Part shown: positions 13,306 to 20,342 of the stretch, one piece after another
Numbering within the stretch: position 1 is the first letter of the stretch
Layout of the letters: each line of letters starts with the position of its first letter
Virus record (IMG/VR): IMGVR_UViG_3300043446_003193
Coordinates: 1 to 64,000 of that record
Length of the DNA stretch: 64,000 nt
Strand: one strand, 5' to 3'
Made by a program: the position numbers and the translations under genes
The notes under the pieces: generated by a model
Databases searched by the model: none
Told to the model about the DNA's origin: nothing
What the model saw: only the letters and a program-made list of their open reading frames with translations

Positions 13306-13789
13306 CTAATATGTTTATAATGTAATTAAATCCCTTATTAACTTCATCAGCCCATTCATCTTTTTGAATACTTCTTATACTACCAATCAATTCCATCATA
13401 TCACCATCAAACTCATACATCTTACCACTACCTGGAACTTTTGATTTCATCATTTGTCCACCAAACATAATTGCTAAATAGTTTAAGTAGATATGCGCAT
13501 TTAATTCATTTTGATTTAAATCACCTAAATAAACAAAATAATCTGTTGTTGATTTTAATATTGGAAATTTATATCCACCCAATTCGTTTATATCTTCCTG
13601 AATTTTAGATAGTCTTTTCAAACTATCATGTGGTAAATTTCTATTTTCTATTTCTTGGAAAATGTAAGATTGTTGAATTAGATAGTTTAAGTATTCATCA
13701 TTACTCAATTTACCCGCAAACATTCTTTGATTAAAATCCATCTTTTCTGCCTTACTATGTAATTCGGCAGTTGCTTCTCTTAAATTCAT
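13280..13789 (-). CDS. ho1: heme oxygenase (biliverdin-producing)
   Basis: LREATAELHSKAE (proximal His), AHIYLNYLAIMFGGQMM distal helix; adjacent to the bilin reductase. Confidence 0.85.
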   Translation of the reverse strand: MNLREATAELHSKAEKMDFNQRMFAGKLSNDEYLNYLIQQSYIFQEIENRNLPHDSLKRLSKIQEDINELGGYKFPILKSTTDYFVYLGDLNQNELNAHIYLNYLAIMFGGQMMKSKVPGSGKMYEFDGDMMELIGSIRSIQKDEWADEVNKGFNYIINILDELQKNTG

Positions 13790-18401: not shown

Positions 18402-18461
18402 AATATTCTTTATTATAAATATATTTGATTAACATTTTAAGTTAATCATTTATAGTTTTTG

Positions 18462-18542
18462 TGGGAGCAGAAGGACTTGAACCTACGAACTCAATGAGGG
18501 CGGATTTACAGTCCGCTGCAATTGCCACTATGCGATGCTCCC
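18462..18542 (-). tRNA. tRNA-Tyr(GTA)
   Basis: GCGGA-CT-GTA-AA-TCCGC, variable arm. Confidence 0.95.
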
Positions 18543-18581
18543 AAAACAAAAAACCCCAACTTAATTAAAAGTCAGGGTTTT
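18543..18581 (-). terminator. intrinsic terminator (putative attenuator 3:4 hairpin) immediately before tRNA-Tyr
   Basis: AAAACCCTGACTT-TTAATT-AAGTTGGGGTTTT followed by TTGTTTT. Confidence 0.8.
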
Positions 18582-18613
18582 CCATAAATTATTTAAAATA
18601 GACGTTCCTAACT

Positions 18614-18682
18614 TTACATACGAATACCACCCCAAATCTGATTCGGTGTACTACAAAGTGTATGTAATGTTAAGTTTTTCAT
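18614..18682 (-). CDS. putative attenuator leader peptide MKNLTLHTLCSTPNQIWGGIRM
   Basis: Manual translation; A-rich start context; overlaps alternative hairpins and precedes the terminator and tRNA array. Confidence 0.7.
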   Translation of the reverse strand: MKNLTLHTLCSTPNQIWGGIRM

Positions 18683-18699
18683 TTTTATTTTTTTTTAAG

Positions 18700-18970
18700 T
18701 AATTCAATTTCAAAATACGCCATCCAAGTCATGCTCTGGTTATTATCAGCCTCATCAAATTACTTTGTACACAAGCAGAGTTTAGAGGGAGGCGGTAACT
18801 CTTTGTAGTGTACTGCTACTAATCCGGCAATCTTTTATCGTCTCTGATTGCATTTTTATTGTGAAAATCCTCCCTAAAACACTTATTACCAATTTTATTA
18901 TATCGTTCTATCTTTTAGGTCATTTAAACGAACCGACTGTTGAATAAGAAACAGCCAAAAGGTTGACCAC
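18700..18970 (-). ncRNA. unassigned structured RNA region
   Basis: AGGGAGG/CCTCCCT, GCAATC/GATTGC, GTACAC/GTGTAC, GGTCA/TGACC and GGCTGTT/AACAGTC complementarities; no long ORF. Confidence 0.4.
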
Positions 18971-18974
18971 GAAA

Positions 18975-19047
18975 GAGCGAATGTGGGAATTGAACCCTAT
19001 CTTCCACCCCGTTAAGAGTGGTGTGCTTCCGTTACACTATATTCACT
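18975..19047 (-). tRNA. atypical tRNA with 8-nt anticodon loop (CTTAACGG); identity undetermined
   Basis: Acceptor AGTGAAT/ATTCGCT, D-arm GTGTAACGGAAGCAC, stem CCACT/GGTGG, T-loop TTCAATT. Confidence 0.6.
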
Positions 19048-19049
19048 TA

Positions 19050-19935
19050 AAATGAGTGAGATTACCTCATTGGGAGTACCAACTTTAGAAAGATTATTTG
19101 TTTCCTTTCCTATCCACTACCTTTTGAGTAGTACCGATACAATGTGGATGATTTGAGACTATCAGTCTTTGAGTTACGTCTTACTCTCTTTATACTCCGC
19201 TTCTTCAAATCTGCCGACCTGATTAAACCTTGCGGGTTTAGAAGTTTTTCCAAAGAATCACAGACCTCTTGCGGAGGTATCGTGGCAAGGAACAGCTCCC
19301 TACTATGTACACACCTTTCGTCCGTAACTGGCAAACACTTATGCTTTTATTTAAATTGAATAATCAAATCCGCATTTGATAAAAGGGTTGGTTTGTAGAT
19401 GGGTTCAGGTAGCGGTTTGCCAACCAGCTCCCTCAACTTTTGGCCGAGAGAATACTGAACTACCCGATGTGTTATCGTCAACACCATTTTTCAAGTCATC
19501 TTCATTAATAGGGATTGGTGTCCCACATTAAAGGTTAGTAACAACACCACTTGTACACCAACATACCTTACGTCCTTTCGGATAGCTTGGTTTTAAGACC
19601 ACTCTTAAATTGAATACCGCAATAGTGTAAAGTGATTAGCCTTACATTTCTTACAGGTATTCTATGGGTTATTCTTATTGTTCTTCCGAACTCAACCGAA
19701 GTATCTACTTACCCCGGTTATTCAAACTCTTCCGATATAGTGTTACCCTTTCGTACAAAGCTCAAATAATATCCCACTTGCATACTTAAGTTATTCTCTC
19801 CTTACGGGGAGAGTAACCGCAGATTGTGTAAACCTAACAATCCACTTTATCCTACTTTCGTAGTTTATTTGACGACCATATGCGGCCGTTGTTTACTATG
19901 TAGAAAAATCTACTATGTAAAATATTTTCAATCTT
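19050..19935 (-). ncRNA. large structured ncRNA, GOLLD-like
   Basis: ~870 nt with no convincing ORF, GC richer than flanks, many GNRA-capped hairpins (CCTCC-GCAA-GAGG, AAACCC-GCAA-GGTTT, CTAC-GAAA-GTAG); size and tRNA-cluster setting fit GOLLD. Confidence 0.55.
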
Positions 19936-19956
19936 TTAAAGAACTATTCGTTTTAA

Positions 19957-20342
19957 TAAATATAACAATAATTTTTTTTATTACCAAATATTTTTAAAAC
20001 TTTTTTTGTAAACTTGATAACGAGTATCTTTCATCACCTATTGTTTCTCATTTACTTATGTAATATACGATAATTTTTTTAAACTACCAAATATATTTTC
20101 AAAAAACTTTTAAGATGTTTGGTATCCGGCTTTCTTCCCTATTGGATAGGTCACTCAATCGGTTTTATTATTTGATGGCTTCAACCAATCATCTTAAATG
20201 TAAGATACGATAATTTTTTCAAACTACCAAATCTTTTTTATTTTTTTGTTGAACATTTTCGGCTGTGTTTACTTACACCATTTAATACTTCCTACTTCTG
20301 AACAACTTTGTAAAGATACGAAAACTTTTTCAAATTTCCAAA
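19957..20342 (-). promoter_or_regulatory. four tandem Bacteroidota-type promoters separated by short hairpin-forming units
   Basis: TTTGG(T/A)A-N-TAT(A/C)TT motifs at ~19957-19988, 20060-20091, 20200-20231 and 20311-20342. Confidence 0.7.

Follow-up and report, generated by a model that had tools for sequence, protein, structure and literature searches.

The window analysed here is a stretch of 64,000 nucleotides, positions 1 to 64,000 of the IMG/VR virus record IMGVR_UViG_3300043446_003193, and all features discussed below lie on its minus strand. Eleven copies of a promoter-like motif (TTGGTA-N17-TATATT) occur in the window, all on the minus strand, against 0.13 expected. Two exact copies (20090-20062 and 19987-19959) are the nearest upstream of a GOLLD RNA, and a one-mismatch copy lies at 20233-20205. 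The GOLLD core (19467-19053) matches Rfam model RF02032 in full, at positions 1-416 of 416 (267 bits, gathering score 150, E = 4e-75). It lies downstream of tRNA-Met and is followed, 6 nt further, by a tRNA-like element (19046-18975) to which ARAGORN assigns an odd 2-base anticodon and which scores 31.6 bits against the Rfam tRNA model. The same GOLLD-then-tRNA order occurs in the unrelated phage LR756502.1.

Further downstream, a conserved stem domain of about 67 nt (18764-18698), of unknown function, consists of an 11-bp closing stem around an almost invariant core of about 47 nt. Five of its stem pairs show compensatory changes and it matches no Rfam family. An A-rich, unstructured linker without a Shine-Dalgarno (SD) motif (18697-18683) separates it from a leader ORF of 22 codons plus stop, MKNLTLHTLCSTPNQIWGGIRM, with its ATG at 18682 and its TAA at 18616-18614. 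Segment 1 (18674-18660) spans codons 3-8 of this ORF and can pair with segment 2 (18621-18607), which overlaps the stop codon. Segment 2 can alternatively pair, at 9 of 9 positions, with segment 3 (18581-18569). Segment 3 is the 5' arm of a 13-bp terminator hairpin with two G-U pairs, a loop at 18568-18563, a 3' arm at 18562-18550 (segment 4) and the U-tail TTGTTTT (18549-18543). The minimum-free-energy structure given by RNAfold is exactly 1:2 plus 3:4 (-42.2 kcal/mol, z = -5.6), and 0 of 200 shuffles fold as well.

tRNA-Tyr(GTA) (18542-18461) starts right after the U-tail. It is followed by an HNH homing-endonuclease ORF (18401-18045; phrog_2255, 1.9e-28), which is absent at this place in most relatives and is preceded by a sigma-70-like site at 18440-18412, and then by the array Asn, Gly, Gln, Pro, Ile, Trp, Arg(ACG), Cys, His, Ser(GCT) and Leu(TAG) (18054-17122). 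The earlier note, made from the sequence alone, had described the leader ORF, the three pairings, the terminator and a list of twelve tRNAs ahead of the next promoter, and it is correct at every coordinate. The tRNA list is also right: although ARAGORN and Rfam miss tRNA-His, a degenerate homologue with anticodon GTG lies at about 17377-17303. The next copy of the promoter-like motif (17115-17087) follows tRNA-Leu(TAG), as the note had claimed, and the same arrangement occurs in relatives. No copy lies between 19959 and 17115.

Conservation and covariation of the leader unit

A search with a pattern derived from the core of the adjacent stem domain retrieved 32 viral and 98 metagenomic stretches, and the unit was found in about 125 related contigs of uncultured freshwater phages. 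An exact 30-mer search returned only the window's own contig, and of 38 loci sharing the neighbouring 507-aa protein only one has the tRNA region. The domain pattern has no match in bacterial and archaeal genomes, the neighbouring protein has none among GenBank phages, and DNA comparison with GenBank phages revealed only tRNA and GOLLD similarities. The host could therefore not be named. A Bacteroidota host is only inferred, from the A-rich start contexts lacking SD motifs: only 3 of 56 long ORFs of the phage have an SD-like motif, and A peaks at -11 to -13, a context which the leader start resembles.

All but one of the homologous loci keep an ORF in this frame, in 62 distinct peptide versions and 13 different lengths ranging from 22 to 52 codons. 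The single locus lacking the ORF also has an array reduced to one tRNA. The leader frame has no stops in 77 of 77 distinct sequences, whereas the other two frames average 3.6 and 2.5 stops and are never open. However, variable sites by codon position are 81/95/96, with no third-position excess, and it thus appears that translation is selected and not the peptide. The linker varies from 14 to 51 nt, but the distance from stop codon to U-tract is 44-58 nt whatever the ORF length. Segment 1 lies at ORF nt 7-19, while segment 2 lies 23-25 nt before the stop in long forms and right after it in short forms.

The four segments covary between lineages. In a swap test on 56 distinct classes, own partners paired better than permuted ones for 1:2 (-9.64 against -7.22 +/- 0.23 kcal/mol), for 2:3 and for 3:4 (-15.65 against -12.77 +/- 0.26 kcal/mol), with 0 of 20000 permutations reaching the observed value in each case. 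The sequences are related, so that permutation P-values overstate independence. In an alignment of 41 relatives, 87.6% of cells in helix 2:3 are paired and 6 of 10 pairs show changes on both sides; the covariation score is 0.249, against 0.139 +/- 0.013 in shuffles (0 of 500) and at most 0.10 when the segments are slid. For example, segment 2 GUUAGAGG occurs with segment 3 CCUCUAAC, GUUAAGGG with CCCUUAAC, and GUCAGGG with CCCUGAC, and segment 1 changes in step.

The first tRNA starts 5-12 nt after the first T-run in 100 of 107 loci, which leaves no room for a promoter, and none of 61 loci has the promoter-like motif between the conserved domain and the terminator. A TATATWTAT string lies 5-10 nt before the ATG in many relatives but is absent from the window and stays unexplained.

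Leader content and the tRNA array

In the window, codons of the leader cover 11 of the 12 tRNA codon boxes of the first tRNA block (block 1). Random 21-codon stretches of the phage's own ORFs cover 5.3 on average, and none of 200,000 draws reached 11 (P < 5e-6). Across the family, 412 of 458 boxes (90%) are covered against 54% expected, and every block-1 tRNA amino acid is represented in the leader in 29 of 42 combinations. Leader content is moreover associated with array content for Tyr (OR 19, p = 4e-5), Phe (p = 2e-5) and Cys (p = 8e-4), an association which survives within-clade permutation (0 of 20000). In several leader families, including both a short-leader and a 30-codon group, leaders without Gln and Pro codons sit before arrays without tRNA-Gln and tRNA-Pro. 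The earlier note's proposal that the leader samples many tRNAs at once is therefore supported, with coverage far better than chance in most lineages, although mismatches exist. The window has tRNA-Tyr but no Tyr codon, and some arrays that lost tRNAs keep the corresponding codons. The isoacceptor-box match which the note had claimed holds for Arg (CGT with Arg-ACG) in the window, but not in most relatives, whose leaders have no CGN codon for Arg-ACG. Most arrays are contiguous where the HNH ORF is inserted in the window; among gaps of 55-125 nt in the arrays, only a few contain missed His or Asn genes and most have no tRNA similarity.

A possible ribosome-mediated attenuator and its alternatives

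The sequence comparisons are best explained by a ribosome-mediated (leader-peptide) transcription attenuator in front of the first tRNA block, a reading to which we assign a probability of about 0.7 in the absence of experimental or transcript data. Transcription would enter from upstream, most likely from the repeated promoter-like motifs before the GOLLD RNA, although the promoter is not identified and a weak hairpin at 18958-18933 could stop part of the upstream transcripts. A ribosome loading on the A-rich start and reading the leader without delay would reach the end of the ORF while RNA polymerase is making segments 3 and 4. With segment 2 covered or just unwound, the 3:4 hairpin would form and transcription would stop 1 nt before tRNA-Tyr. 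If instead the ribosome lagged anywhere in the first roughly two thirds of the leader, segment 2 would be free to pair with segment 3 as it emerges, the terminator could not form and polymerase would run into the tRNA genes. In the window, the promoter-like site at 18440-18412, carried by the HNH insertion, could bypass the attenuator for Asn through Leu.

Folding with ribosome footprints is consistent with such a switch before segment 4 exists. Over 48 representatives, the median predicted probability that segment 3 is sequestered is 0.86 for the best stall site inside the ORF and 0.10 for a ribosome at the stop. However, without any ribosome, 2:3 often outcompetes 1:2 in this truncated transcript (median 0.63): termination in the absence of translation, and hence the role of segment 1, is not robustly predicted. 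Moreover, with segment 4 present, equilibrium folding keeps the terminator at P about 0.95 for nearly all ribosome positions in most sequences, and only three sequences switch. Antitermination must therefore be kinetic, as in trp, which cannot be shown in silico. In support of host plausibility, leader-peptide attenuation signals are reported in Flavobacterium, which also lacks SD-based initiation (PMC9723704).

Since the leader holds about one codon for almost every tRNA in the block, it would work as a checklist of decoding capacity. Shortage of any one charged tRNA, whether from starvation, host tRNA decay during infection or anticodon nucleases, would turn the array on, and accumulated phage tRNAs would turn it off again, as in a tRNA homeostat. 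That translation speed sets read-through, and the nature of the physiological trigger, are inferred.

Two alternatives seem unlikely, to a similar degree. The hairpin and U-tract could simply be the constitutive, leaky terminator of the upstream GOLLD/tRNA-like RNA, with tRNAs made by fixed read-through followed by RNase P cutting and the small ORF a passenger. Indeed, the GOLLD unit of LR756502.1 ends with a tRNA and then a terminator, and equilibrium folding favours the terminator regardless of ribosome position in most sequences. This does not explain, however, why a coding segment covaries with the 5' arm of the terminator and segment 1 with segment 2, why the stop-to-terminator spacing is fixed, or why leader content tracks the array. 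Alternatively, the pairings could be real but governed by a factor or ligand binding the stem domain, in a riboswitch-like or protein-dependent manner, with translation secondary. The domain is the most conserved element of the locus, always sits just upstream of the leader and, with its covarying closing stem around an almost invariant core, resembles an aptamer or protein site. Yet the linker separating it from segment 1 is variable in length and sequence, no complementarity to segments 1-4 was seen, no known riboswitch or T-box model matches, and neither frame conservation nor codon-tRNA coupling is accounted for; the two mechanisms could nevertheless coexist, for example if the domain controls ribosome loading. 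Least likely is a functional micro-protein whose mRNA is merely ended by the terminator: Trp is present in every complete leader, His and Gly in almost all, and the C-terminal motif LEDTDVG shows only synonymous variation at its Asp and Thr codons within one large clade, but there is no overall third-position excess, lengths vary, C-termini are interchangeable, the whole C-terminal half is missing in the window's clade, amino-acid changes follow RNA pairing needs (for example Glu to Arg where segment 3 changes) and content tracks the tRNA array.

Relation to known systems

Literature searches for any described attenuator before phage tRNA genes found nothing, and tRNA genes are thought to be controlled at promoters (growth-rate and stringent control), not by attenuation. 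The question of why and when phages express their tRNA arrays is tied to host tRNA decay and anticodon-nuclease defences. It is about as likely as not that phage tRNA arrays can be autoregulated in the full sense, by an ORF selected to hold one codon per downstream tRNA. This would be the first ribosome-mediated attenuator known to control tRNA genes and the first built as a multi-amino-acid sensor, a direct supply-and-demand circuit responding to host tRNA depletion or anticodon-nuclease defence. It would also physically link a translated leader to the 3' side of a GOLLD transcript. The unit gives a handle on the biology around GOLLD, an RNA of unknown function. Being about 140 nt long and modular, the element could also serve as an engineered sensor of tRNA availability.

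The classical attenuators of amino-acid biosynthetic operons (trpL, hisL, leuL, thrL, ilvL, pheL) share with this unit a short ORF overlapping segment 1, mutually exclusive 1:2, 2:3 and 3:4 hairpins, an intrinsic terminator directly before the downstream genes, and antitermination that is kinetic (here by inference), because 3:4 is more stable than 2:3. In short forms, as in the window, the stop codon is likewise placed so that a terminating ribosome would mask segment 2; in long forms the ORF runs through segment 2 and stops about 15 nt beyond it. Here, however, a tandem run of one regulatory codon is replaced by about one codon for each of 10-15 amino acids, the genes presumably regulated are tRNAs and not enzymes, and the unit lies in a phage, downstream of a large non-coding RNA rather than at a 5' end next to a promoter. 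In drug-responsive leader-ORF attenuators (erm, cat, vmlR/msrD type), ribosome stalling in a short upstream ORF frees an antiterminator, as proposed here, and acts as a general sensor of elongation problems, but these depend on specific arrest peptides plus an antibiotic, whereas here the peptide sequence is not conserved as such and its content matches the downstream tRNAs.

GOLLD RNA is known to sit next to tRNA genes in phages (Weinberg et al. 2009; Kretsch et al., bioRxiv 10.1101/2024.12.08.627333), and no leader or attenuator is mentioned in the GOLLD papers consulted. A 3' extension of GOLLD was rejected, since the model is matched in full upstream, ending at 19053, and the unrelated locus of LR756502.1 ends in a tRNA plus terminator without this unit. 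In T-box riboswitches, tRNA status sets the choice between terminator and antiterminator upstream of translation-related genes, as proposed here, but uncharged tRNA is bound directly, without a ribosome. No T-box hit was found in 18440-20300 at the gathering score or at E up to 10, and over 18543-18700 the Rfam scan found only sub-threshold chance hits, with no riboswitch or known leader. The one T-box-like string in the window (GGGUGGUA) is a Trp-x-Gly coding stretch that varies as codons do in relatives.

Genomic context of the leader and the first tRNA block

All features are on the minus strand. The 22-codon ORF runs from ATG at 18682 to TAA at 18616-18614, with segment 1 at 18674-18660 and segment 2 at 18621-18607. 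The terminator is composed of a 5' arm (18581-18569), a loop (18568-18563), a 3' arm (18562-18550) and a U-tail extending to 18543, and tRNA-Tyr begins at 18542. The minimum-free-energy structure given by RNAfold is 1:2 plus 3:4, at -42.2 kcal/mol (z = -5.6), and none of 200 shuffled sequences folded as well. The coordinates and the three alternative pairings proposed in the earlier note, which interpreted the region as a leader-peptide attenuator of a phage tRNA operon, are correct. The tRNA-His included in that note's list of twelve tRNAs is missed by both ARAGORN and Rfam, but is present as a degenerate homologue with anticodon GTG at about 17377-17303. Its anticodon stem-loop is conserved, although the T-loop reads GGGGCAGUACC instead of GGUUCGAUACC and the gene may be non-functional.

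The window is part of a 209-kb IMG/VR contig with 32% G+C. In transcription order, the leader is preceded by a phage tmRNA and tRNA-Met, several copies of a phage-specific promoter-like motif, a GOLLD RNA (19467-19053; Rfam, 267 bits), a tRNA-like element (19046-18975), a strongly conserved stem domain (18764-18698) and an A-rich linker. The tmRNA (20832-20432) has a 23-residue tag (DEMSTMTYNDLMAFVGADYAVAA), and near-identical tags occur in the relatives L007, L041 and L043. The promoter-like motif, TTGGTA-N16-18-TATATT, lies within a longer conserved string and occurs 11 times in the window, always on the minus strand, against 0.13 copies expected (for example at 20090-20062, 19987-19959, 17115-17087 and 15040-15012). 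It does not match the canonical Bacteroidota TAnnTTTG box. The next copy after the leader, at 17115-17087, follows tRNA-Leu(TAG), and the twelve tRNAs therefore have no such promoter of their own. An HNH homing endonuclease ORF (18401-18045) is inserted between tRNA-Tyr and tRNA-Asn in this genome, is absent at this place in most relatives and is preceded by a sigma-70-like site, the possible bypass promoter flagged in the earlier note. A second HNH ORF (15822-15337) lies inside the tRNA region, and gaps of 260-1100 nt in the arrays of relatives may be similar insertions.

Only 3 of 56 long ORFs have a Shine-Dalgarno-like motif and the start regions are A-rich. This fits a Bacteroidota-type host, and the start of the leader looks like a real start. 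No related isolate or prophage was found in searches of GenBank phages and of bacterial genomes.

Conservation of the leader frame and of the alternative pairings

A syntenic contig (L007) first showed that the non-coding block 20240-18632 is 81% identical between the two phages, while the neighbouring protein is only 51% identical. A pattern derived from the invariant core of the stem domain then retrieved 32 viral and 98 metagenomic stretches, mostly from lakes. This domain, which has no Rfam match and always lies just upstream of the leader, has an 11-bp covarying closing stem surrounding an almost invariant core of about 47 nt (GAGGCU..UAACC.GAGCAUGACUUG..UGGCGUAUUUUGAA). The 123 loci parsed include 62 distinct peptides of 22 to 52 codons, and the loci missed in this parsing also have the ORF. 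The single exception (locus L079, 3067-3149 region and downstream) has lost the ORF: the stem domain is followed directly by the terminator, a single tRNA-His and then the promoter motif, providing a natural 'leaderless' control. Most homologues carry a TATATWTAT string 5-10 nt upstream of the leader ATG (e.g. L040 9770-9806 and L042, minus strand, around 13330-13350), which could be a promoter element, a translation signal, or neither. The 14-nt linker of the window lacks it.

The frame of the leader has no stop in any of 77 distinct sequences, whereas the other two frames have 3.6 and 2.5 stops on average and are never open. Although there are 13 different ORF lengths, the distance from the stop codon to the U-tract stays at 44-58 nt, apart from two sequences at 67 nt. 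Variable sites are spread evenly over the three codon positions (81/95/96). Open frame and placement, rather than the sequence of the peptide, appear to be selected, as expected of a leader peptide and not of a functional small protein.

In long-leader relatives, segment 1 lies at ORF nt 7-19 and segment 2 lies 23-25 nt before the stop, whereas in short forms such as that of the window segment 2 directly follows the stop. The four segments change together between lineages: segments 2 and 3 appear as GUUAGAGG with CCUCUAAC, GUUAAGGG with CCCUUAAC, GUCAGGG with CCCUGAC, and UGUUAGG with CCUAACA, and segments 1 and 4 follow, even where this changes the encoded amino acids. In a swap test on 56 distinct classes, own partners paired better than permuted partners for each helix: -9.64 against -7.22 +/- 0.23 kcal/mol for 1:2, -12.13 against -10.06 +/- 0.28 for 2:3 and -15.65 against -12.77 +/- 0.26 for 3:4, with 0 of 20000 permutations reaching the own value in each case. 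On an alignment of 41 long forms, the antiterminator 2:3 has 87.6% of cells paired, and 6 of 10 pairs have changes on both sides. Its covariation score is 0.249 against 0.139 +/- 0.013 in shuffles (0 of 500), and at most 0.10 when the partner is slid. The terminator is 89% paired, despite a one-column misalignment in some rows.

With the whole transcript at equilibrium, the terminator wins in most sequences whatever the position of the ribosome. Any antitermination must therefore be kinetic, as in trp. In the relevant snapshot, in which the transcript ends at segment 3, the predicted probability that segment 3 is sequestered by upstream RNA (medians over 48 representatives) is 0.86 for a ribosome at the best stall site inside the ORF, 0.10 for a ribosome at the stop codon and 0.63 without a ribosome. 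The robust prediction is that a ribosome finishing on time leads to termination and a lagging ribosome to read-through. That an absence of translation also gives termination is not secured, because 2:3 is intrinsically stronger than 1:2.

The first tRNA starts 5-12 nt after the first T-run in 100 of 107 loci, and none of 61 loci has the promoter motif between the stem domain and the terminator. In many loci the motif reappears after tRNA-Leu(TAG), as in the window.

Correspondence between leader codons and the tRNA array

In the window, the leader covers 11 of the 12 tRNA codon boxes, whereas random 21-codon stretches of the phage's own ORFs cover 5.3 on average and never reached 11 in 200,000 draws. 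Across the family, every amino acid with a tRNA in the first block is represented in the leader in 29 of 42 distinct leader-array combinations. At the codon-box level, 412 of 458 tRNAs (90%) have a cognate codon, against 54% expected, and the main systematic miss is Arg-ACG. Presence of an amino acid in the leader goes with presence of its tRNA downstream for Tyr (OR 19, p = 4e-5), Phe (p = 2e-5), Cys (p = 8e-4) and Val (p = 0.006). The overall association survives permutation within clades (0 of 20000), although the sequences are not independent. The pattern is asymmetric: a tRNA present without its codon almost never occurs, except for Tyr, Met, Arg and Glu. The coupling is imperfect: some arrays that lost tRNAs keep the codons. 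Leaders without Gln and Pro codons (the MKNLTLHTADCLTIRIW group and loci L075, L082 and L107) all precede arrays without tRNA-Gln and tRNA-Pro, and leaders without Gly (L144, L146 and L158) precede arrays without tRNA-Gly. The one leader with Gln in place of the near-invariant His (L078) precedes an array in which Cys is directly followed by Ser, with no tRNA-His. Recurrent spacers of 60-95 nt inside the otherwise tightly packed arrays (17665-17606 in the window; between Gly and Gln and between Ile and Trp in relatives) show no similarity to any called tRNA.

A possible attenuator of tRNA transcription

The simplest account of these observations is a ribosome-mediated attenuator that gates transcription of the first tRNA block according to how quickly a leader holding one codon per tRNA is read. 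It would switch the array on when any of these charged tRNAs is limiting and off when supply is restored. The interpretation proposed in the earlier note is thus supported by comparative evidence, and we assign this mechanism a probability of about 0.7. On this reading, the element is a leader-peptide attenuator with a new target, tRNA genes, and a new sensor design, a multi-codon checklist. Leader-peptide attenuation and SD-less initiation are reported for Flavobacterium (PMC9723704). No description of an attenuator located before tRNA genes was found, in phages or bacteria, and the GOLLD literature examined mentions only proximity to tRNA islands.

The alternatives seem unlikely, since each leaves most of the comparative evidence unexplained. 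A switch set by a factor bound to the invariant stem domain could nevertheless coexist with the main model. A constitutive leaky terminator is equally doubtful. A functional micro-protein is the least likely, given the even spread of variable sites over codon positions.

Other features of the region may be noted. ARAGORN reports a 2-base anticodon for the tRNA-like element, which begins 6 nt after the GOLLD RNA, and the same order of GOLLD, tRNA and terminator occurs in the unrelated 642-kb phage LR756502.1 (locus L169: 3389-3795, 3805-3877 and 3882-3902). Between the tRNA-like element and the stem domain lies an optional block of about 160 nt (18955-18775), which is over 90% identical to the relatives L040 and L044 but absent from L042-type relatives. 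It contains complementary GGGAGG and CCUCCC strings and a hairpin at 18958-18933 with a weak U-tail. Finally, a heme oxygenase (Pfam, 8e-14) and a ferredoxin-dependent bilin reductase (3e-28) lie side by side at 13789-12676, a phage bilin-synthesis pair in a non-cyanophage-looking, SD-less genome.
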